A stretch of DNA of 62,957 nucleotides, the filler included, from Perkinsus chesapeaki ATCC PRA-425 (lineage: Eukaryota; Protista; Perkinsozoa), in assembly GCA_013115145.1 (NCBI GenBank). It is 8 parts of 8 records of this genome, joined end to end, with 100 filler letters (N's around TTAATTAATTAA, not from the genome) between each part and the next. Parts side by side here need not be neighbours in the genome. Positions count along the whole stretch, not along the records: positions 34,779 to 39,022 come from JAAPAO010001288.1; 7 more parts are not named here. One strand, 5' to 3'. Each line of letters starts with the position of its first letter. Positions within the stretch are counted from its first letter, which is position 1. Shown here in pieces: positions 3,347 to 39,022 of this stretch. The notes under the pieces are model-generated. The model saw nothing but the letters and a program-made list of their open reading frames with translations. It was not told the DNA's origin and made no database searches. Made by a program: the position numbers and the translations under genes.

Positions 3347-4216
3347 TCTCCTGAAGAGAGAGGTCTTGACTATTGGTTGAACCGTCTGCTCATATTCTTG
3401 TTATGTCAACCACACACTTGTGCTGTCGTATTGGACGAGTCGTCGCGCGAGCCATGTGTCCTTAATCACACTCCAAGTTTCGTCTTGGGAATCGTGTTCG
3501 TAAATGTGGGTTGTCAGCTACGAAGCTGGTCTTCAAAGTGTCTAACGGAATCTAATTTACCAGAGAGGTTTATGTGCTCGCCCAATTGTTGTTCAGTTTG
3601 CTTGTGTTGTTCCAACGAGTTTCATGCGCAAGGAAGACTGGCCGTTTTACTGAGGTTGAAACCTTCGCGTCAGGGGACAGTGACACAAACAGCTGAAGCA
3701 CTCAAGCTAGTTATCCCGCGCCTCCTCAGCTCGTGTTTTGCTCGGGTCATATCGGCGCTCCAAGTGCACTTTCGCGCTGGCGAAGGATGCGGCTCTACCA
3801 CCATGTGAGCCTGCTCCTCCCCAGCCTTTTCTCAGTTTCCCTCATGCTCACTTCCCGCATAACGATTCTTTACCGACACGCGCGGGTTTGCCGTCACCTC
3901 AGCTTCTCGGCGTAACCCGCCACGGGGCATAACTATTCCTGTATCAGAGAGGTATAATCTCATGTTTCCCCGTCGGTTGATGTCCTTTGAGAACAACTCT
4001 TCAACCAAAGCTTGAAGTAGCTGTTTGACAATTTTTGTTGTGTTGGCGACACAGTGTCGTTTGCTTACTTGATGCGGTCAGTCTCTATCGCAATAATAGA
4101 ACTGTTCACCATTTTAATGTACAAATGTTCTGTCTGTCGATGTTCTGTTTTATGTTTTGTTTTTGGAGTTCTGTATATGTCGTGTATTTCTCTTTCAAAG
4201 TTAACACCTTTCCCTT

Positions 4217-5428
4217 ATGAGCGAAGTAGGTGCTGGGGCTCCTGCTGATGAAGTTTTGGAAGTCCTCCATTTGATTTGTGACTCGGATGTCACCGTGCAG
4301 AAGCTCTCTGACTTTCTGGTGTCTAGTCAAGTCACAAAGGCTAGAGCTCTTGCGTGTCTTGCTCCAGGCCTAATCGCTGCTGCTACATCGGCTATAACTC
4401 CACCCGAAGGGACAACGGCTAGCGTCTGGAAAGGAACCGTAGCTTCTTTATTGCAAGCAGCTCGAGAGGAAGCATCTGATCAGCTTAACCACAGAGTCCA
4501 GCAAGCTACTAGAGATATCCAGTCTAAATCGCCTGGGGTTCCAATCAGAGGGAACTCGAGAGGATCTCGCCACAGGCGTGTATTTGCGAAAGCTATGAAA
4601 TCTGTGGCTTCGAGGATTGGGAATACGGACTTTCCGACTTCGCTGGTCCCTCCTCAAAAAGTTCTGGAAGTTTTGTATCTCAATCCAGGAGCCTATATAG
4701 ATTTTGAGAAGTATTTCTTAAGTTCACCAGACCCTTCGTCTTCTGGTGGTTTCGAGGGGAGTCTGGCTGAAGATATGGAAGGAAATCCAGTCGTGGTTAA
4801 GAGTTTTCGTTCGTCGGACTCTACAGAGAAAGGAAAGCCGATGAAAAACTACAGCGCTAAATGGTCGAGGGCTTTCATCATTTATTCTCTGGCAGTACTG
4901 ATAATTCAGGACTGTCGCTGTACTACTTCCAAAGACTCTGTAGATTTGGGCTCCCCGACTGAATCTAGTGATGATGAGTCTTCAGATGAAGCCGATGATA
5001 AGTTATCTATTCTTGATATGTTGATGTTTTATGATCGAATTTTGTGGTATGCTGCAGAATATAATTGGTCAGTTGCATCTTTGGTGGACAAAACTATTCG
5101 GCAAGCCATCGATTCAGCCTGCCGGAGTGGTACTAAGTCCTTAGCGCAGTGCTACCAATCATTTGATCTGTGGTCTGGCAAAGCTTCGGAAGCAGTTGGT
5201 CTGGCAATGAATTCTCAGACTTTTTATCGCTCGAAGGGCTCTCCGCACCAGGAATCAACTACACAAGCAACCTCTTCATTTCGGGGGACCTCTCAAAGTC
5301 AGCGTCCATTCAATCCTTCCAAGCAAGGAACAAAGAGAGTATTCGAAAGCAGGGGTTTTACTCAGCCTCCTCCTCCTCCTAAGCAGTCTTCTGCGGGTTC
5401 CTTCCGTTCCGAGTTTTCTCACAAATAA
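4217..5428 (+). CDS. gag-like ORF1 of YR retrotransposon
   Basis: 403-aa ORF directly upstream of RT ORF, S/Q/P-rich C-terminus; assigned by position. Confidence 0.7.
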   Translation: MSEVGAGAPADEVLEVLHLICDSDVTVQKLSDFLVSSQVTKARALACLAPGLIAAATSAITPPEGTTASVWKGTVASLLQAAREEASDQLNHRVQQATRDIQSKSPGVPIRGNSRGSRHRRVFAKAMKSVASRIGNTDFPTSLVPPQKVLEVLYLNPGAYIDFEKYFLSSPDPSSSGGFEGSLAEDMEGNPVVVKSFRSSDSTEKGKPMKNYSAKWSRAFIIYSLAVLIIQDCRCTTSKDSVDLGSPTESSDDESSDEADDKLSILDMLMFYDRILWYAAEYNWSVASLVDKTIRQAIDSACRSGTKSLAQCYQSFDLWSGKASEAVGLAMNSQTFYRSKGSPHQESTTQATSSFRGTSQSQRPFNPSKQGTKRVFESRGFTQPPPPPKQSSAGSFRSEFSHK

Positions 5429-5816
5429 AGAGCTGACTAATAGTTTGAAACTATTATTGCATTTTGTGGCTGTTCTTTCTGTTTTTATTATTGTATTTCT
5501 AGCCTGATATTTTCCAATTTTTCCTCTTTGGTTATTTGCTTATTCTTGGTTCAACTTTAGATATATTTTTTTTAGCTTGTCAGAAATGTTAATCTGTATG
5601 AAAGTTAGTAGGTCTACTTAGATATTATGATCTGAGTTATTTTATGATAGTCTAATAGATGTTTGATCTGACAATACTGAGAAGGTTGCACTGATGATAT
5701 CGGTCCAATGTATACTGGGTTTAAAATTCAGTAATTTTTTTTTCCATGATAATCTGTATTTTGCTTTTAGTTACATTTTCTTTTGTTTGTTGCTTCCATT
5801 TGTTGGTTACGCTCTT

Positions 5817-8105
5817 ATGCCTAAACGTGGAATCAGAAGTCATACCAGTATTCTCACTCGCCGTAAGCGTTATTCTGCTAATAAGAGAGCTCGTGAATTA
5901 CTAACAAGTCCTCCGGATGGTGTTCAGGATTACGAGATTAGCGATGTCGGCCATACATTAGTTGATATAACAAGCTATATTGATTTTCTCACCGATCTAG
6001 GGAAAGAACATCTAGCTTCTACTAATGCTGATCCTCTGCGCGATGGTACTGGTTTGAATGCTCTATTGCCCAGTCAGCATCTCACAAATGCTCTTTACTC
6101 TTTGCCTGAGGTCGCCAAAGACGTCACAAATGTTTTTGTTAAATCGGTGGAAAATAACAATCTTGTGGATTTTGTTGGTCGTTTGAAGGGCTCGCCGACC
6201 GAGAAGGAGGTAAAAGTGCTTGAGCAGAGATTTGGTGATGCAGCTCAGCAGTGTCGAAGCTCTTTAGCTAAGATCTTGCATTGTTCTACGAGAAAATCTC
6301 AGTGTGGTGCTTCCATTCGATCTGATATACTCCGAAACCTTATTTCAGCTTTACATGATCCAGATTCATCATTGTCTTCTGAAGTTGATGCAGGAGTTTC
6401 GCTTGGTATAAGCCAGCCTTTACGTAAGACGGGGATCTTCCCTCCATACACGAAGAAGCGTGATGCCGAAGAGCTTCAACTTCTTCGTCTTCATCAGCTT
6501 GCCAATTATACCTCTGCAAGTGAAGATGCTTCGATTATTGAAGATATTATATCGAAGGAAATTCGCCTGGGCCGAATGAAACCACTCTCGCTGGATGAGG
6601 CTAATGATCCTTCTAGAGTTTATGCGAAAATGGCATTGATCAAGAAGATTGGTTCGGCATCTTCTAAGCCTAAATATCGCATTGTCGAAGATTACCGTCG
6701 GAATGGTTTGAACTCACGAATGCATGCAGAGGAGACAGTTTCTTTACCGAGACTCCGTGATGTCCAAGAGTGCCTTCGTGATTTACTATACTATACGAAA
6801 AGTGTTGATTCCCGTGTTATAGATTGTCAAGCCAGACATCTAATGTTCTTTAGCTATGATATTGCTTCTGCTTTCAGAAACTTATTTGTATGTCCGTCTG
6901 ACGGTCGTTGTTTATGTGTGTACGCGAATGGCAAGGCGTACCAGCATGTCGCCTTGCCATTCGGAGTAAAATTAGCCCCTTATCATTGGTGCAGATTTGC
7001 AGCGTGTGTTGTACGTCTTATACGAAAAGTTATCCAAAGCGTATTCCCTGACACTCCATTTATTAATATGATTTACGTCGATGATGGATTTATGGTTTTT
7101 CCGGAATCAATTTATAATATGTGTGTATGCTTGTGTCTTCTTGTCTGGAGAGTATTGGATGTTAACCTTTCCTGGGAAAAGTGTATTTTCCACGAGACCT
7201 CTGACCAATACATAGGTTTTGTTTTCTCCATTGCTAAGGATGAGCTACATGTTAGTATTCGGGAAGGTATTATGTCTAAAGCTAGAGAGCAAGTTGTTCA
7301 ACTCTTACAACAACGTTTAGTTACAAGATCGTCACTTGCCAAATTGGCTGGTCGCCTTATCTTTGTTACTCAGTTAGCACCTTATTTACGCAGTTTTCTG
7401 CAACCTTATTTTGCTTCTCTCAGTGTAATCGAACGGATATCTTTACGTACTTTACGACTCTCTAGTAATTCTGCTACGTTCCAAGTTTCCCAATTCTGGC
7501 TATTGATCCTTCAATCCTCTACGCTTCGTATTTCTATTAATATCGACTATGGTCCTTCGTCATCTTCTATTCATTTGATTGCTTGTTCAGATGCTAGCAT
7601 CCTGGGTCTTGGTGGTTTCGTGTCCTACTCGTCGACAGGCTGCTTCTTCTCTTACTCGGTTTCTGCTACTACTCTCGGTCCATGGACTCAGTTTTTACGT
7701 CAACCAGGCTCCGTTTGTAGCTCTGACATGACGTTGTTAGAATTATTAGCGGCGTGTGCTACAATCCAAGCATCAATGTCTCTATTGGGTCCATCGTTAC
7801 GCTCTGCTCAATCACATCCCATTGTTCTCCATTTATTCTCAGATAATCAATCTGCTGTAGCAGCGCTTTCCAAACTTTATTCTCGGAGTCCAGTTCTCTC
7901 TTCAGTCCTTCGTTGTTTAGCCCGTCTGTTGTTTTGCTCTTCTTTTATTCTGGATGTAGTTTATTTGAAGGGCTCTACGAATTGGCTTGCGGATGCACTT
8001 TCTCGACAAATCCCGGTTGATGTACCTTCGACTTGGACTCAAGCCTCCATTGATATCTACTTTCGAGATCTAATGACCACAGCAAATTTTGTTGCTATCG
8101 AGTGA
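5817..8105 (+). CDS. Reverse transcriptase / RNase H (DIRS-type)
   Basis: YDIASAF, LPFG, YVDD; RNase H CSDAS, LLELLA, SDNQSA, NWLADALSR. ATG 5817 preferred over 5694 because the extension is T-rich and looks non-coding. Confidence 0.93.
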   Translation: MPKRGIRSHTSILTRRKRYSANKRARELLTSPPDGVQDYEISDVGHTLVDITSYIDFLTDLGKEHLASTNADPLRDGTGLNALLPSQHLTNALYSLPEVAKDVTNVFVKSVENNNLVDFVGRLKGSPTEKEVKVLEQRFGDAAQQCRSSLAKILHCSTRKSQCGASIRSDILRNLISALHDPDSSLSSEVDAGVSLGISQPLRKTGIFPPYTKKRDAEELQLLRLHQLANYTSASEDASIIEDIISKEIRLGRMKPLSLDEANDPSRVYAKMALIKKIGSASSKPKYRIVEDYRRNGLNSRMHAEETVSLPRLRDVQECLRDLLYYTKSVDSRVIDCQARHLMFFSYDIASAFRNLFVCPSDGRCLCVYANGKAYQHVALPFGVKLAPYHWCRFAACVVRLIRKVIQSVFPDTPFINMIYVDDGFMVFPESIYNMCVCLCLLVWRVLDVNLSWEKCIFHETSDQYIGFVFSIAKDELHVSIREGIMSKAREQVVQLLQQRLVTRSSLAKLAGRLIFVTQLAPYLRSFLQPYFASLSVIERISLRTLRLSSNSATFQVSQFWLLILQSSTLRISINIDYGPSSSSIHLIACSDASILGLGGFVSYSSTGCFFSYSVSATTLGPWTQFLRQPGSVCSSDMTLLELLAACATIQASMSLLGPSLRSAQSHPIVLHLFSDNQSAVAALSKLYSRSPVLSSVLRCLARLLFCSSFILDVVYLKGSTNWLADALSRQIPVDVPSTWTQASIDIYFRDLMTTANFVAIE

Positions 8106-8226: not shown

Positions 8227-9324
8227 ATGGTTGATTGGAAGTGCCTACCATCCCTTCGCTGGCAGCCTCTCCCCAGCTTCGCTACGTGCACTAAGTTGTA
8301 CCACGTACCAACTGCAAAGGCACCCCTAGACCGGACGCAAAATACACGAGGTTCTAAAAGCTCAAAGCGCAGCAAGGCAAAGCATTTTCTACATGGTTCT
8401 ATCTCGTCCCGCGAAGTGTCTGCCTTTTGCCTATCTGGTTACTCAAAGGGGACGTTATCACAAATGAAGTCGGCATGGAACCTCTATCTAAATGTCACAG
8501 CCGCCGCATCTGTGGCGCCACTACCTCTTTCTCGTTTGTCTCTATGTTCCTTCGTTTGCGCTATGACCAAGGCGGACTACGCTTACAACTCGGTCCTGCG
8601 TTATCTGACCCACGTCAAGAACAAAGCAAGTATATCTGGGTATAAGTCGGCGCCCACCACTGATTTTTGGGTTACTTTGGCTCTACGAGCTTCGGGCAAG
8701 CTCCTCGGAAAAGGCACAGTCCTTCGTGCCCACACTCTAACCATCGAGCAGGTGCCTTCCATTTTGGAAAAGCTCAACGAAGCCCACGCCACTATGTTTC
8801 TTCTTGGCACCGTAGCCCTACTACGTATCAGTGAGCTACAACGTGTGCAAGTTCAAGACATCGTCTTCACTTCAACCGGAATCCATCTTCGGATCCCACG
8901 AAGCAAGACTGATCAATGCGCATCAGGGCGCGTAGTTCCTCTGGTTTGCCTTAGTTCTTCCTTTAGTTCTTCTAAAAGATGCACCTCTAACTTATGCGTC
9001 CCTCACGCCCTCAAGCACTGGCTCGACAGCTCGCCAGATCTCTCCGCCAGCAGCAACCTCTTCACCAAGGAACAGTCAAATTCCTTTCCAATGTCCCTCA
9101 GCGACGCCCTTTTCGACTTACTGGGCAACCGCCCGCGCTGTACGACCCATTGCATGCGCCGGTCGGGGGCCTTGATCGCCTTCCGTCGAGGAATGCCATT
9201 AGAGGAAATAGCCCTTCTAGGGCGGTGGTCGGGTACTCAAACTTTGGTCGACAACTACCTTCGTGACGCGACCGATGAGCTCTCTCAAATCTCCAAACAA
9301 GTATTTAAAGTCTGGCGTACCTAA
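8227..9324 (+). CDS. Tyrosine recombinase of retroelement
   Basis: LLRISEL (R), PRSKTDQ (K), HCMRRSGA (HxxR), LGRWS, DNYLRD (Y). Confidence 0.92.
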   Translation: MVDWKCLPSLRWQPLPSFATCTKLYHVPTAKAPLDRTQNTRGSKSSKRSKAKHFLHGSISSREVSAFCLSGYSKGTLSQMKSAWNLYLNVTAAASVAPLPLSRLSLCSFVCAMTKADYAYNSVLRYLTHVKNKASISGYKSAPTTDFWVTLALRASGKLLGKGTVLRAHTLTIEQVPSILEKLNEAHATMFLLGTVALLRISELQRVQVQDIVFTSTGIHLRIPRSKTDQCASGRVVPLVCLSSSFSSSKRCTSNLCVPHALKHWLDSSPDLSASSNLFTKEQSNSFPMSLSDALFDLLGNRPRCTTHCMRRSGALIAFRRGMPLEEIALLGRWSGTQTLVDNYLRDATDELSQISKQVFKVWRT

Positions 9325-10000: not shown

Positions 10001-12361
10001 TTACGAGGTCCCAGTCGTCAGCCAATCTGGTCTCCTGCGGTCGATGTAGGGACTCTCCCGTCTCGAAGTTATGGAAGTATTTAGAGCCTGCGATGACTTC
10101 AAGTGACGATTAAGCCGATTGCATTGCTCACCACGGCGGTCAAAGAATGCATGCCATTTGATACCAAGAAGTGTATGCGGTGGAGCTGTCCTTGACAGTG
10201 ACTCTAGCAGCTCCTTCCGAGGATCCAGTTCACCCTTGGCCAGAACCCTGCCTCCAGGGCCCGTACCTGAAGTTCCAATATCCGACAGTGAGGCGTCTTC
10301 ACTGATCACCATGTGATGCCTGAGCCTTTGTCAATTGGGACTGCAAGGAGTGGCCAACACTTCGCCTCTTTGTCTCTGTTCCCTCCTCTTGTTCGATATA
10401 CGCATAGTCTCGAGTGTAGTCTATTTTAACGGGCTTTAAGTCGAGGAACCTGATAACTTTCCCCACCACCACAAGCCCGGAAGTACAGCGCCCCACCTGG
10501 GCAGCGTTTTCACGTGTTTGCCTGTGTAACATTCATGACAGTATGAACCAAAGGTGTAGGTGCACTGGAGCTTTGCTGGTAGAGTCCGACAAAGGCAGCA
10601 CGGTATAAGATGATTCGGCACGTGAAGCTTCCGGTTGCCCTGCACACCAGTAACATGTGCCAAAGTCTATTGCTTACCTTCATGTGAAGCTTCTCGAAGC
10701 AAGTTTCACAAAGGCAATCTCGGCACTTCGGACAGTAGCAGCTGGCTACTATACCGCACTCGACACAGTACACTTGACCTGACACCATACTTGACATTTT
10801 TCAAGATTGAGGTACTCACCGGCCTCGTTGGGGCCTATGGTGGCGCTGGGGTCCTCTTGCTCGAGGACCTCCTGGGAGATCTGGAACCTGAATAAATAAC
10901 AGGTCACTAGCGGTGGGTGCTCCGCCGCGGTGACCTGTTCCTCTCGTTATCGATGATCTCCAAACAGTACTTCACCTCCTGGGTGTCAAGCTCAGTTTCA
11001 AGACGGTACTGCAGGGAGAAGGCCTTGATGAACACCTTAATGGTTCGGACCTGCTCGATGGCCTAGAAAGGGTTTGAGGATATCGGGCATACCATGAAGG
11101 GCTCCGCAACAACATCGACTTTGAGTATCTCAGCAATTTCTCGAACATACCGGGGAGACACTATAGGCTCCTGCGTGAGGATATTGGAGTTGCACTCGGC
11201 CTCATAGGACTGATCAAGGCCACAAAGCTCTGCGGTTCAAAGTGGAGGAGGTACCCAAAGCATCCGGTTGATCCTGAGTTTGATGTGCTCCTCCTTGCTG
11301 ACATGTCGGCAGTGGTCCAGCAGCTGAGCGAAGTAATCGTAGAAGGGGTGCTTCCAGGTTGACTCGGAGGTCTCTTCATTAACGTAACATATTATACCTG
11401 ACACGGACATATGGATAGGTACCAGCAAATCTAAAGCCTACTTCCAACCCCGATGACAGAAGTCCATGGCGGGGGCAGCTCCTGGTCCGCGAAGCTCTCA
11501 ATGACCCAGGTGTATTCCTCGTCGATTTGGGGATCAGCCTGTACATGGAGACTTGGTGGAAGGTTGTGCATCTGACCTACTTGGAGGTATGAGAACCACT
11601 CGTGAAGTGTCGGTATGGCCCCAGAGCACCGGAGCATTGGCACCACGTTATTGCTGGTCCTCTCCACAGCCTTCTGCGTGGTAGGGTCAGCTATACCGAA
11701 GAGGAAAAGTGGATCGCAGTCCAGAAACTCAAGGGCTGCCTGAGGCAATGGGGGCCTTGGAAACGCTTGGAAGAGTATAGATCGTTTACCTCGCCGAGTG
11801 CCTGCGTATCTTCCAGCGCGGTCATGACTTCTATCCAAAGCGTATCAACATCATCTGTCCAGTCCATAAGAACTGACTCTAAGTCTTGAAAGCAAACCTA
11901 CCACCAACTTTACTAGCAGGCAGGCGGAGGCGGAGGCACAAGGCTTACTCTGAACTCAGGTCCCAGCTGCCCCTCTCTAGAGCAGAAGAATATCTCACTG
12001 GTCTCAGCGCTAGGGTCCACCCCACTGGCGTCCTCCCCTTCCCGGTTGACCTAAACAAATCCTATAGGTACTCAGGGGTAGCCGGCGTCGACGCCTACTC
12101 TGATGCTGGCCTTGTAGCCAGCGGGAATGATACCCATATGAAGCTCATCGGGAGCCCCATCGGGATCTGGGGGGTACTGGAATCGGTAGGCTGTTGGGAC
12201 CTGAGGACCAACTCTGGCTGACCAACTCGGAGACCTTTCTTGCCTACCTCGGCATTGACAGTGACAGGATATCCAAAAGACAGGATCCTGTGTATTCGAG
12301 GCTGGGCCTTAGGCCGCACTATAGGGTACTCAACCTCTTGATAGTCGTTATTTGGCGGCAT
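10001..12361 (-). CDS. Multi-exon WW-domain and B-box zinc-finger protein (boundaries approximate)
   Basis: ELPPPW...YYVNEETSESTWKHP (WW-like, split by an intron); CVECGIVASCYCPKCRDCLCETCFEKLH and CCLCRTLPAKLQC..YCHECYTGKH (B-box-like). Confidence 0.75.
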
Positions 12362-34778: not shown

Positions 34779-35208
34779 GTAGCCGAAGCGTGGCCATTCT
34801 GGATGAACGTCGATATCTCCTTTGCAAGCCAAACTGTATCTTTCGACGCGACCGCTTCTTCGGCAGCACCGCGCATGTCACGGGCGGTTTTTACTCGCCT
34901 ACGTTGACTATTCGGCAATCGGGATTTACCTGTACAAAACTAGACTCACTTAATTTAAATTTGAACGAAGTGCATGTTTGCTAATTGACTTGTTGCTCAT
35001 AAAGCTTACTATCCACTAAGGATAGTAATACTATTATAGTATTACTAGTAAAGAGTCCCACTTTGCCACAACTGAATGCCCGATCCAGGCAGGACAATTG
35101 ACAAAAGAACATGTAATAGACTATACGGAAACGAATACTAACCGGTCTAACATATCGGTTAAACAATAAGAACCGCTACGGAACCAACATTAGGCACCGT
35201 ACAAAGGA

Positions 35209-37361
35209 TTAATGACGGATCTTCGAAATTGGGTTACCCGACGAGTTATGCCTTTTTTTGACCATCTGATTTGCTGATTTCAAACTGTTAGCATTCACCA
35301 AAACCTCAATCCAGGATTCCGGAAGTACTTCCGCAGGATTGCTAGATCTACTTATGCGATCGGCATAAACATTCTCAGCCGATGGTACATAACAGACATC
35401 AAATCGATGAGCAATGCATCCTAATTTTAATGCCATCGCCTTCAACAATTCGTTTATCCGATAGGTGGAGGATCTAAATTTCTGAAACTGCACTTTAGTA
35501 CCGGTGTTATCGGTCTCAAGGCTAACCCAAATCCTCTCCTCTCTCACCAATGCAAATTTGTCAATGGCCAACAAAAGACCGAGGCATGCCGCAAGGGTTT
35601 CTAGGAAAACCATATCTCTGCAAGACGGCTTCAAAGGGTCTTCCAAAAATCGTCGCCACCAGCCCAGGTTGGCGCCTCCGCGAATGTCCAGCTTATACCA
35701 ATAAGTGACCGGACCAAAGGAAGCCCACGCACCCAACGCTGTGGCAGACGCATCACTTGCAATGAGAACTGCAGGAGTCTCCCCAAAAGGTGCCGGAACT
35801 GGAAGACGAACTCGGAAATAATTATTTTCAAGCAGATCCTGCCACCATCGCAAAGCTTTGAAAAGCTCGGACTGCCGAGAGACACGAGCACGAACAATAT
35901 TATGTTTCCTCAAGCCCGCCAAGCGAGAATAGAATGGAGAAAGGAACGGCCGACAGAAACTACAAACCATCGACAAGCGTGCCAATTTACCAGTGAGTGA
36001 CTCCAAAGTTCGGGTAGGAACCGACTGGACACTGCTTACCACCGATCGCAGCAACTTTTTGATCTCACTAAACTTATCGTCCGGAATTGCAATCATAACC
36101 GGATTGCTATTCAAGATCAAATCGAATCCAATAAACTTGATGCGATCACTACGGAAGCATAACTTAGACCATGATATCGTGACACCAACGAACGAGATGA
36201 GGATAATCACGACACAAATGATCTTTAGCGCCATTGCGGCGACCAGCAGCCACAAGAAGTCATCGATATACACCATCGAGCCAGCCCCTCCCACTACGGA
36301 GAGCTTCTGCAGAACACAGATAAAATGGACGAACGTTCTCAAAACTCTGAGCAACTTAGAGGATAGTCGACAGAAACCCCAAGGAGCGCTACAAACTCCA
36401 AAAGGAATCATTAGGTGCTCGTAGCCCCACTTCTCTTCTCCGGAAGTGACCGCCACAGAACAATAACGCCTATCGGCAGGCAATAGGCCTATATGCCTAT
36501 ACGCCCCCTTCAAGTCCATTATGACACCTATACTATCAACTTTTTCCCCATTATTGTCATACATAACCTGTTGTATTAACTTGACGATATCTCTCAATCG
36601 GGGTAGACAAACCCTCTCGACTAGATTGATCCTACTATTAGCCTTACTGCGACGGTAGTCCTCCACTAAGCGTAATTCTGCTGAGCCTGCTTTGGGAATC
36701 GCCGCCACTCGGGAAAAACAGCGGCGCTCGTCCCACATCTCATCATGAGATAACGGCCGCATGCGTCCCAAGCGAACCTCCTCTTCTATCATCCTCAAGA
36801 CGGTAGCATTTTCGCTCTCGGCCGAGCCATAGTTCTTGAACGACCTCTGCAGTCGGCTCAATACCTCGTCCTCCGTTACTTGTGCATCCGATGTAGGACC
36901 GTGCTCGGGGAAAACGCCTGAAGGCTGTAGGCTTCCAGAAAAGCCTAAAGCCATCCCGAAATCAATTTCCTCGCATAAGCGACTATCGTTCATATTGTCA
37001 TTGGTCAACTTGCTTAGCCATTGAAGGAGATCCGGCCTCAGCGGGCCGCCTACTCTAGCCGTTCTCGAACTTACTTCAAAACGTTCAGAGACCCTACCGT
37101 GTAGATGATCTACCGCGCGTTCGAACAAACCCTTAATCTCATCAACTTTTAGAGGATCAAGCTTTCCATCTGCATGAACAGCGGCTTGTAAAACTTCTGT
37201 GAGTTTGAAATCATCAATGGTACTTAACACTTCCGTTACAAAACAGCTTAGTTGCGGGCTCGGACTTGAGAGGGAATCCTCCGTCGGGAACACTCTTGGC
37301 CTACCGCTACCGTCTTGATAATCACCGGCAGTTTGGACTCGTGCCTCCCGGCCAGGATTAC
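35209..37361 (-). CDS. RT / RNase H ORF, no ATG ahead of the conserved region
   Basis: MDLKGAYRH, IPFG, YIDD, ASDASA, LETLA, ETDN, NVYADRISR; frame open from about 37364. Confidence 0.9.
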
Positions 37362-37473
37362 CTAATTAACAAACTCGTTGAAACGAGCGCAAAGCTCACT
37401 GATTCACACGAGAAACCATTGATGAATACTACTATACGGCCTTGAGCCGTAACACTCTCAACTTCACTTAAAT

Positions 37474-38628
37474 CTATTGCTTACCACTCTTCTTATTTCC
37501 ATTATTAGCAGAATGTCCAGTACCGCGCGCATCAGCGCTCCCTTCATTTTTAGTCTCATACTGCGAAGGCTTCGAATACGGACTTGGACCACTGGCCTGC
37601 CTCACTTTCGCCGTCAGATCATGAGAATACTTGCAATTAACACCATAGGTACAACGACCTTTGATATAGTGTTTGCACACACCAGGCGGAAACTTGTAAG
37701 GGGTGCCCAAAGCATGAGACTGAGTACTAGCAGGACCTCGCATAATAGCCGAATGGTTCGCTAGCGCTTGAGCAGACGCCATAATACTAGGATTAACATC
37801 AGTTCGGAATCCGTCGCTCAAAGATACAGAACGCTGGCTAATTCTCAAGGCCAATTGGTCTCTGTACTGACGGTCATATTGAATGATGCCAGTAACAGTT
37901 AGAGGCACAGCGTTGTCATATAATCTCTTCCAGTAAGCCAACAGGTCATAGAAGCTCACACCAGGAACATACCCCGGGCTGTTGGGATCTTTACCATCAT
38001 TTGTCAGGGGATGGAAAACGGACATTGTCTGGGCAAAACGTAAAAAACAGCAAGTAAAGTCTGTAAAACTAGTTATCTTCTTCAAATCAGCATCACGATC
38101 GAAAACGATGTTACCAGTTTTACCGCATGCCCTAAGAGGGATGCTACCTTCGCTTAAACTGCCGTTGCTTCCAATAGAGCGCATGTCCCGTAGAGGGTGA
38201 AACTCGCGCATGTCGATATTCACGGCGGAGTGGACCTTCATCATGCGATTCAGCGTTGCTGGGTTAGCTGGAAGCATGCTCGCTTCAGGAAGGTTACCAA
38301 ACTTTTGCCCCGCTTTAATAAGCAAATCACCAAAATCAGGGGTTGGATCTTGACGAGGGGAAACATTATCACACTGTTGGAGAGCTCGGTCAAAAATCGC
38401 ATTAAGAACGCACACCTCAGGCAGCTCTAATTTTGCCTCAGTTGCGACTTTAGTACGCAAATCTTCACGGCGAGCAATAGCCTGCACCATCTCCAAGGAA
38501 GTGAGCTTGTTCATTGTGAGGACAGGAGCAATCTTAGTGACAGCAGTCTGGTCAAAGTCCTTCGCCAAACATAAGACCTCAGCCGGTAAAACGTCCAGCT
38601 GGGGAGATGCAGCAGCGTCGTCAGCCAT
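37474..38628 (-). CDS. gag-like ORF1 with C-x7-C-x5-C-x3-H zinc finger
   Basis: CKHYIKGRCTYGVNCKYSH; IIQYDRQYRDQLA resembles YR-element ORF1 cores. Confidence 0.8.
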   Translation of the reverse strand: MADDAAASPQLDVLPAEVLCLAKDFDQTAVTKIAPVLTMNKLTSLEMVQAIARREDLRTKVATEAKLELPEVCVLNAIFDRALQQCDNVSPRQDPTPDFGDLLIKAGQKFGNLPEASMLPANPATLNRMMKVHSAVNIDMREFHPLRDMRSIGSNGSLSEGSIPLRACGKTGNIVFDRDADLKKITSFTDFTCCFLRFAQTMSVFHPLTNDGKDPNSPGYVPGVSFYDLLAYWKRLYDNAVPLTVTGIIQYDRQYRDQLALRISQRSVSLSDGFRTDVNPSIMASAQALANHSAIMRGPASTQSHALGTPYKFPPGVCKHYIKGRCTYGVNCKYSHDLTAKVRQASGPSPYSKPSQYETKNEGSADARGTGHSANNGNKKSGKQ

Positions 38629-39022
38629 GTCAATAATTAAAGGAGAAGAAAAAGGGGAACAAAGGAACTAAACCAATCATCCCTTTACATTTACTTATTT
38701 ACTTAAACCAAGAACAACTAACTGACCCTAAACTCTCTAGGGCTCACACTGAATCCTTTACGGCTCATCGGCCAATAAAGAAATAATAATACTAACAGCA
38801 CATATGGCTGCCATATATGCACGCCGCGCTTCTCATGCGTGCTACGACCTGTTTTTGAACGACTTCCACATGATACAGTATCATTGATATTGGGGCGAGC
38901 GAGGATTGATTGTATCGACACAACGCATCATGCACTACGCATGTTATCACACTACAAATATTCAAGTAACACGCTCCGGACGGTAATCCCCGAGTAAACT
39001 GGGTCAACTACGTTAACCTGTA

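Follow-up and report, generated by a model that had tools for sequence, protein, structure and literature searches.

How can a retrotransposon translate its reverse transcriptase (RT) if the conserved beginning of the enzyme lies ahead of any start codon and is separated from the preceding gag-like open reading frame (ORF) by a series of stop codons? The question is raised by a tyrosine-recombinase (YR) retrotransposon of Perkinsus chesapeaki ATCC PRA-425 (GenBank assembly GCA_013115145.1), a member of a genus of mollusc parasites. The window analyzed here is a stretch of 62,957 nucleotides (nt) joined from eight parts of records of this genome with filler in between. The element lies in the part derived from JAAPAO010001288.1 and was read on the minus strand from 39022 to 34779, the edge on the recombinase side cutting through it. 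It is apparently an intact YR retrotransposon of a Perkinsus-like alveolate and not a virulence gene, and most of it is contained in the piece. For comparison, 11 related loci from outside the piece (L001 to L011, ten from Perkinsus and one environmental) and a set of related proteins (designated by P-numbers) were available. The explanation that we consider probable is that of a Ngaro-like element in which a partially spliced phase-1 intron would fuse the gag-like protein (Gag) to RT and RNase H, while a second intron probably connects these to the recombinase in the same way.

An earlier note on this DNA had proposed that the boundaries between the three reading frames are introns. For the first boundary it pointed at a donor just ahead of the gag stop (AGT G|GT AAG CAA TAG, GT at 37484; the bar marks the exon border) and at an acceptor, TTAATTAG|GT AAT CCT, with 37362 as the last intron base. 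Both sites are present and delimit a candidate intron of 123 nt, with a GC content of 0.40 versus 0.48 in the exons. ORF1 and the RT frame, which is open from 37365 to 35212 (718 codons) and closed by a stop at 35209-35211, are in one frame. They do not overlap and have six in-frame stops (TAG, TAA, TAG, TAG, TGA, TAA) between them, so that readthrough is ruled out by the stops and frameshifting by the missing overlap, and neither can link gag to RT. The sites themselves are sparse in the 4.2 kb of the element: GGTAAG occurs twice, one occurrence being that three codons before the gag stop, and TTT..YAGGT (Y, pyrimidine) is confined to the two proposed acceptors. Within the RT exon an ATG first appears at codon 123, past a conserved YQDGSG block, which bears out the claim that RT has no early start codon.

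The gag-RT junction was compared in six elements, ours, L003, L001, L004, L005 and L006, whose RT sequences are 27-68% identical to ours, and GenBank model proteins were mapped back onto the DNA of the loci where models existed. In this order the donors read G|GTAAGC, G|GTAAGA, G|GTACGT, G|GTAAAG, G|GTAAGA and G|GTAAGT, are of phase 1 throughout and reside 3-7 codons ahead of the gag stop in all cases. The acceptors are likewise all of phase 1 and consist of a pyrimidine-rich tract followed by YAG|GT, YAG|AT or YAG|GC. The spacers in between measure 123, 212, 311, 270, 176 and 153 nt, leaving remainders of 0, 2, 2, 0, 2 and 0 upon division by three, and each of the six contains stops in all three frames. 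Upstream of the donor the gag tails are unalignable except for a final Gly (ANNGNKKSG, TGSVGQRGG, RGPAKRPRG, KLDSKRHSG, AKSTTSEEG and EKDERSGAG). The codon for this split Gly is GGT in all six elements, versus a GGT usage of 40% among their Gly codons (p about 0.004), the bases that follow the split G fit GTA[AC][GA], and the next codon specifies Lys in five of the six. The spliced-leader RNA of Perkinsozoa likewise has a donor of the form G|GTA (PMC9399869).

On the other side of the spacer, the RT exon starts with the conserved block [YF][QR]DG[ST]G just past the acceptor and continues with ARVGGPLRP further on. The first Met follows the former block in every element (codon 123 in ours, 22 in L003, none in L001, then 69, 194 and 176 in L004, L005 and L006), so that the conserved start of the RT protein is left without an initiator of its own; upstream of the block neither a cognate nor a conserved near-cognate start codon was found in the six elements. 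P. chesapeaki gene models in GenBank independently place introns at the same sites and thus arrive at Gag-RT (P0002, P0007 and P0017) and Gag-RT-YR proteins (P0011 with 1385 and P0018 with 1451 amino acids (aa)), spanning 690-1451 aa overall. With this agreement among six divergent Perkinsus elements and the GenBank gene models, the intron reading of the gag-RT junction is well supported, and the junction is likely a genuine spliceosomal intron.

Two observations concern the sequences on either side of the first acceptor. In L001, a (AGTC)n microsatellite of ~125 nt (6760-6884) is embedded in the gag/RT spacer, as expected for non-coding DNA. The [YF][QR]DG[ST]G block appears in degenerate forms (FKSGFG, LRDGSG, VRDGTG and TDGTG) in more distant Perkinsus families. 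We considered it as a possible part of an aspartic protease and dismissed this reading by inspection only, as neither the hydrophobic-D-[TS]-G-A context nor a GRD/GRN block is present.

Several points have to be set against the intron at the gag-RT junction. The introns in GenBank stem from automated annotation, and gene finders tend to bridge adjacent ORFs with introns. Furthermore, the six elements are homologous and their sites do not amount to six independent observations. In L002, the closest relative, the homologous gag donor reads GC in place of GT and the YQDG block is deleted; this copy is decayed and its RT is frameshifted. Lastly, splicing is here a prediction from genomic sequence and gene models.

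For the RT-YR junction, ours, L002, L001, L004, L005 and L006 were compared. In our element the proposed donor, TCG G|GT AAC CCA at 35237, and the proposed acceptor, TTTTGTACAG|GT AAA TCC at 34930, are found exactly where the earlier note had placed them, with 308 nt to be removed. All four sites of the element, donors and acceptors alike, interrupt a Gly codon in phase 1 (G|GT, AG|GT). It follows by arithmetic that the frame is kept upon removal of intron 1, upon removal of intron 2 and also upon joining of donor 1 to acceptor 2, so that the skipping from gag to YR envisaged in the note would indeed stay in frame. The acceptors of the six elements (GTACAG|GT, TCGTAG|GT, TTTTAG|GT, CCTCAG|GT, TATCAG|GT and TTTCAG|GT, in the order given) are all of phase 1 and in each case lie 4-12 codons past the opening of the recombinase frame, which is open from the acceptor onward. 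Our recombinase frame opens at 34939 and leaves the piece at 34781; this short stretch includes the FIQNGHA block and a Met that is shared with L002 and L004. Immediately past the acceptor, the residues G-x-S-R-[LI]-P are kept between ours and L002, with synonymous differences.

The donors at this second junction tell a different story. They read G|GTAACC in our element, G|GTATTC in L002, A|GTTCGT in L001, A|GTAGGA or A|GTGATG in L004, A|GTTGAA in L005 and C|GTAGGG in L006. That they are so poor and variable (GTAACC, GTATTC, GTTCGT, GTTGAA) speaks against cis-splicing between RT and YR, as do three further points. The donor of the GenBank model for L004 removes a conserved LPxSW block, which renders this model doubtful. 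Enumeration yielded 6-62 frame-restoring GT..AG pairs around such junctions, and with so many in-frame pairs expected by chance, restoration of the frame alone proves little at junction 2. In ours, L002 and L004, a Met situated 23 residues ahead of FIxxGH could allow the recombinase to be initiated independently; L001 has a Met nearby and L005 has none. In L002, the donor GG|GTAATG was discarded, being of phase 2 and out of frame, and the phase-1 site G|GTATTC was chosen afterwards, a revision that illustrates how much freedom of choice exists at this junction. Of the conservation that the earlier note would lead one to expect among related elements, the gag-RT sites and the RT-YR acceptor, which recurs in all six elements, are retained, and the RT-YR donors are weak and variable. 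The conserved phase and a frame that is already open ahead of the Met speak for some form of cis-spliced fusion. For cis-splicing between RT and YR in the form first proposed, the conserved acceptors, the weak donors and the Met available in three elements leave the balance close to even, with a slight tilt in favor.

It is conceivable that only junction 1 is cis-spliced. Acceptor 2 could then receive a spliced leader, giving rise to a separate YR mRNA with the conserved Met as its start, or else pair with the strong donor at the gag end, such that a subgenomic Gag-YR or YR mRNA resembling that for retroviral env is formed. Perkinsus is known to add a spliced leader to AG acceptors by trans-splicing (PMC2868825, PMC9399869), and the pattern of strong, conserved acceptors and weak, variable donors is in line with it. 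The same is true for the position of the Met in ours, L002 and L004 and its proximity in L001, and for L009, where the annotation treats the recombinase as a gene apart that starts at an ATG of its own. Pairing across the RT exon is accommodated by the fact that donor 1 and acceptor 2 are of phase 1 in all six elements. However, a 5' untranslated region provides no reason for an acceptor of phase 1 or for a frame that is open up to the Met, both of which hold in six of six cases, nor does it sit well with the residues kept past the acceptor in ours and L002 in spite of synonymous differences. In addition, the L005 recombinase frame is devoid of a Met near its start, and the GenBank models P0011 and P0018 join RT to YR. 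We consider this arrangement unlikely.

More distant Perkinsus families lack such introns, a further point to be held against our reading. They have to be considered together with the possibility that no splicing takes place at all and that each of the three ORFs is translated by itself, through a non-AUG start, reinitiation or internal entry, with GT and AG kept for coding reasons, e.g. as part of a Gly-Lys tail of Gag. In L007 (P. olseni JABAHT010000805.1), gag and RT reside in the same frame with a single TGA between them (KSG*RGQ, 3840-4010), there is no GT at the gag end, RT has an annotated ATG, and the RT and YR frames overlap by 11 nt (6130-6150), which for this family points to readthrough or separate initiation and not to splicing. 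L008 from P. marinus does not contain any in-frame GT..AG pair at RT/YR. The RT ORFs encoding P0131, P0025, P0036 and P0046 (P. olseni/P. chesapeaki) begin with a conserved MP[HYK][KR]R followed by ~30 residues of strongly basic character; such MPxRR starts point to an initiator of their own and perhaps to a nuclear-localisation or RNA-binding tail. Counted in favor of splicing, models for L009 (4160-4858) and L010 (1206-1687), two more distant families of P. chesapeaki, place an intron at the gag/RT junction as well, here of phase 2 and 480-700 nt long, with its GT overlapping the gag stop (AAG AA|G TGA and AAG AA|G TAA, respectively), such that splicing would remove the stop itself. Accordingly distributed, the predicted phase-1 intron layout is a mark of one clade of CCCH-gag elements and not of all YR elements of Perkinsus.

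Separate translation would also agree with the ORFs of DIRS and Ngaro elements, which are usually separate or overlapping (PMC3783388), with those related families in which RT has its own ATG or is separated from gag by one stop, and with the Lys after the split Gly in five of six elements, which could be a feature of the protein. It leaves unexplained, however, that no start codon precedes the YQDGSG block, that the split codon is GGT six times out of six with a fit to GTA[AC][GA] behind it, that the gag tails are otherwise not conserved and that the stop follows 3-7 codons past the donor in every element. Spacers that differ in length, are richer in AT and are filled with stops are nonetheless flanked by a pyrimidine-rich tract and AG. 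All in all, translation without any splicing appears improbable.

That the elements are decayed relics, with debris as spacers and chance as the source of frame-restoring GT..AG pairs, would fit the frameshifts in L002 (RT) and L001 (gag and RT), the internal deletion in L003 and the ease with which in-frame pairs arise by chance, and is nevertheless hardly credible given the gag ORF (384 aa) and RT frame without internal stop in our element, the same architecture in families with only 27-40% RT identity and motifs as specific as the GGTAAG close to the gag stop and the TTT..YAGGT confined to the two acceptors.

Returning to the preferred reading, that of an intron fusing Gag to RT, the element may be expressed as follows. 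Unspliced full-length transcripts would give rise to Gag only, ending three codons past donor 1, and would at the same time serve as template for reverse transcription; since the spacers are retained in all genomic copies, the template must be unspliced RNA. In some of the transcripts the spliceosome would remove the 123-nt intron together with the gag stop and five more in-frame stops. The product would be a Gag-RT/RNase H fusion, which appears to be the only evident route to translate the conserved, ATG-less start of RT. The recombinase is probably attached to RT likewise, through removal of the second phase-1 intron (308 nt); alternatively, acceptor 2 may be used with donor 1. We infer that splicing occurs, that it is partial and that it sets the Gag:RT ratio, in the way frameshifting and readthrough do in retroviruses and partial splicing does in Ogre (PMC6317226). 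Alternative splicing into Gag, Gag-RT, Gag-RT-YR and Gag-YR next to an unspliced template, as pictured in the earlier note, would be a reasonable set of products. A more sweeping version holds that an entire clade of Perkinsus YR elements has swapped overlapping ORFs and frameshifting for two phase-matched stop-removing introns, that four isoforms are made and that a share of the RNA is shielded from the spliceosome; this we find rather doubtful.

Table 1. Features of the YR retrotransposon, with positions counted along the window.
Feature	Position	Strand	Basis or remark
Leader/terminal region 5' of gag, non-coding, 394 nt	38629..39022	-	Without long ORF in the gag frame; piece starts here
ORF1, gag-like, 384 aa including the stop, ATG start	37474..38628	-	ORF list; unspliced stop 3 codons past donor 1
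CCCH zinc finger C-x7-C-x5-C-x3-H, gag residues 317-337	37618..37680	-	Pfam zf-CCCH_4, E 4e-9, above curated cut-off
Candidate intron 1, 123 nt, G|GTAAGC...TTAATTAG|GT, phase 1	37362..37484	-	Sites recur in 5 relatives and in GenBank models
Exon for RT and putative RNase H, acceptor 1 to donor 2	35238..37361	-	Frame map; 67% identity to P. chesapeaki P0001
YQDGSG block, RT-exon codons 14-19, before any ATG	37303..37320	-	[YF][QR]DG[ST]G in 6/6 elements
Reverse transcriptase domain	36121..36609	-	Pfam RVT_1, E 2e-8, above cut-off; Ty3 RT 4ol8, E 0.002
Candidate intron 2, 308 nt, G|GTAACC...TTTTGTACAG|GT, phase 1, GC 0.37, stops in all frames	34930..35237	-	Phase-1 acceptor recurs in 5 relatives
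Tyrosine-recombinase exon, start only	34779..34929	-	57% identity to start of L002:3508-4581

The identification as a YR retrotransposon, also made in the earlier note, is upheld by the RT frame and the third frame (Table 1). RT belongs to the RVT_1 class, with Ty3 RT as the best match among solved structures. For RNase H, D/E/D/D-like blocks (SDAS, LETLA, TDNTG and ENxYAD) are conserved as seen by eye in the alignment of relatives; Pfam gave no match on the C-terminal 296 aa of the RT frame, which comprise the putative RNase H region, and the distant relatives P0004 and P0005 carry PF17917. The 53 recombinase residues present in the piece resemble the start of a full-length ORF of 358 aa in L002 (ORF3). 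The latter matches PF00589-bearing proteins (E 1.7e-5 in a search of 5.8 billion sequences), and its alignment features LLR, SKT, HSLRR and GRW..Y blocks corresponding to the R-K-H-R-(W/H)-Y catalytic set. Pfam itself did not recognise the L002 recombinase ORF, the recombinase profile gave a weak match to XerH (E 0.15), and precomputed matches to PF00589, albeit weak, exist for the ORF3 genes of L009 and of the contig encoding P0029.

Scanning the piece against Pfam did not reveal a protease or an rve match. The RT frame ends ~30 residues past the last RNase H-like block and no further domain was found, such as the methyltransferase that characterizes the DIRS1-like superfamily. Because methyltransferase, protease and DDE integrase are all lacking, the order gag, RT-RNase H, YR appears to reflect the content of Ngaro rather than DIRS1, and we term the element Ngaro-like. 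DIRS1-like elements are marked by inverted terminal repeats and an internal complementary region; long inverted repeats were not found in L001-L003 or in the piece, which is without its 3' end. Ngaro is defined by split direct repeats of the form A1-[ORFs]-B1A2B2, and other repeats give a weak hint at these or at terminal direct repeats. At its start (window 38987-39022, minus strand) the piece has 36 nt with 80% identity to L003:8745-8780, a stretch beyond the recombinase ORF. The L001 element is flanked by a 42-nt direct repeat (5094-5135 versus 10655-10696, 5.6 kb apart), and in L003 blocks are duplicated after the recombinase ORF (8528-8739 versus 8934-9065).

The nearest RT protein is P0001 and the nearest gag proteins are P0006 (71% identity) and P0007 (55%), all from P. 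chesapeaki. With 67-71% identity to the nearest copy in GenBank, our element would represent a different family or species. Word searches returned five matches for RT, two for gag and three for the recombinase, all in single-member clusters and none of them derived from a transcript assembly, in a searched set from which Perkinsus sequencing-run assemblies seem to be absent. A profile search among 1.84 billion representatives retrieved 2478 relatives, headed by proteins of P. chesapeaki, P. olseni and P. marinus annotated as 'hypothetical' or 'C3H1-type domain' proteins, and neither metagenome scans with the RT alignment nor a search with an exact 24-mer from the RT exon produced matches. The gag finger is of the CCCH RNA-binding type and is shared by the P. 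chesapeaki relatives, which UniProt lists as 'C3H1-type domain-containing protein'. The Gag of retroelements usually carries a CCHC knuckle, not a CCCH finger.

Some of the related loci are of interest in their own right. L003:5856-8360 (P. chesapeaki JAAPAO010000683.1) is an internally deleted derivative that comprises a 5'-truncated gag, intron 1 and an RT exon broken off after ~145 residues, with the recombinase following directly from residue ~43; it keeps the intron-1 splice sites and may be a non-autonomous copy. L001, with its gag and RT frameshifts, is a further broken copy. L011:1445-6140 (ENA metagenome ERZ28008711) exhibits 25% RT identity, an extra ORF of 404 codons between the CCCH-bearing ORF and the RT ORF, and an ATG of its own for the latter; it is too distant to inform on the junctions. 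On the short P. chesapeaki contig of L010, a MULE-transposase-like gene (5768-6850) is located ~2 kb downstream of the retrotransposon.

Among known systems, the closest parallel is provided by Ogre and Bianca, Ty3/gypsy elements with long terminal repeats from legumes, in which two coding blocks are likewise separated by a short non-coding intron. Fusion of ORFs by an intron that is partially spliced is proven for Ogre and suspected for Bianca (PMC6317226). In all six elements we find the hallmarks of the Ogre type, namely a spacer that is bounded by GT and AG, has phase-1 borders, contains stops in every frame and restores the frame upon removal. Unlike Ogre, ours is a tyrosine-recombinase element of an alveolate, the intron is situated right at the gag stop, and there is a second candidate intron before the recombinase; moreover, splicing has been shown by experiment for Ogre, while that of our element is predicted from its sequence. 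The stop-removing placement, singled out in the earlier note as the most striking property, therefore has a precedent in plants, and what sets it apart is its occurrence in a YR element: introns go unmentioned in the consulted reviews and surveys of YR retrotransposons, in which the ORFs are described as separate, overlapping or in one frame (PMC3783388, PMC3266345, PMC4157794, PMC8547959), an earlier mention in older DIRS/Ngaro papers being possible. With Ngaro (order DIRS) our element shares a gag-like ORF1, an ORF2 for RT and putative RNase H without methyltransferase, an ORF3 for YR (PMC8547959, PMC3783388) and a Ty3-like RT. It differs in its CCCH-finger Gag and in that described Ngaro elements have ORFs that stand apart, share a frame or overlap with a frameshift. 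As for the env mRNA of retroviruses, the pol mRNA of foamy viruses and the gag-only RNA of Ty1/copia in Arabidopsis (PMC5580714), the unspliced transcript acts as genome and Gag mRNA in these systems and splicing alters the proteins or their ratio. In contrast to what is proposed for our element, their subgenomic mRNAs drop coding sequence, and no stop is removed to fuse Gag to Pol. Finally, KAF4650786.1, KAF4677994.1, KAF4650709.1 and other P. chesapeaki models annotated as 'C3H1-type domain-containing protein' belong to the same element family, with introns already modeled at the gag/RT and RT/YR junctions and fusion proteins of 1084-1451 aa as the result. They are automated, unnamed 'hypothetical proteins', and a description of them as retrotransposons with stop-removing introns was not found in the searchable literature.

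The proposed organization would explain the 1000-1450 aa 'C3H1-type domain' hypothetical proteins of Perkinsus in GenBank, and transposon annotation that relies on ORFs will mis-split such elements. Since retrotransposons are copied via RNA, introns should be lost from them. Like retroviruses, elements that keep an intron must strike a balance between splicing and the export of genomic RNA in unspliced form. The case is a tractable one, as culture and transfection are available for Perkinsus marinus. In the searchable literature, an intron that removes a stop and thereby adjusts the Gag:Pol ratio has been shown only for Ogre from plants. If the reading given here is true, the YR elements of an alveolate would have arrived at an Ogre-type expression strategy by convergent evolution, conserved at less than 30% RT identity and possibly used twice within the same element.

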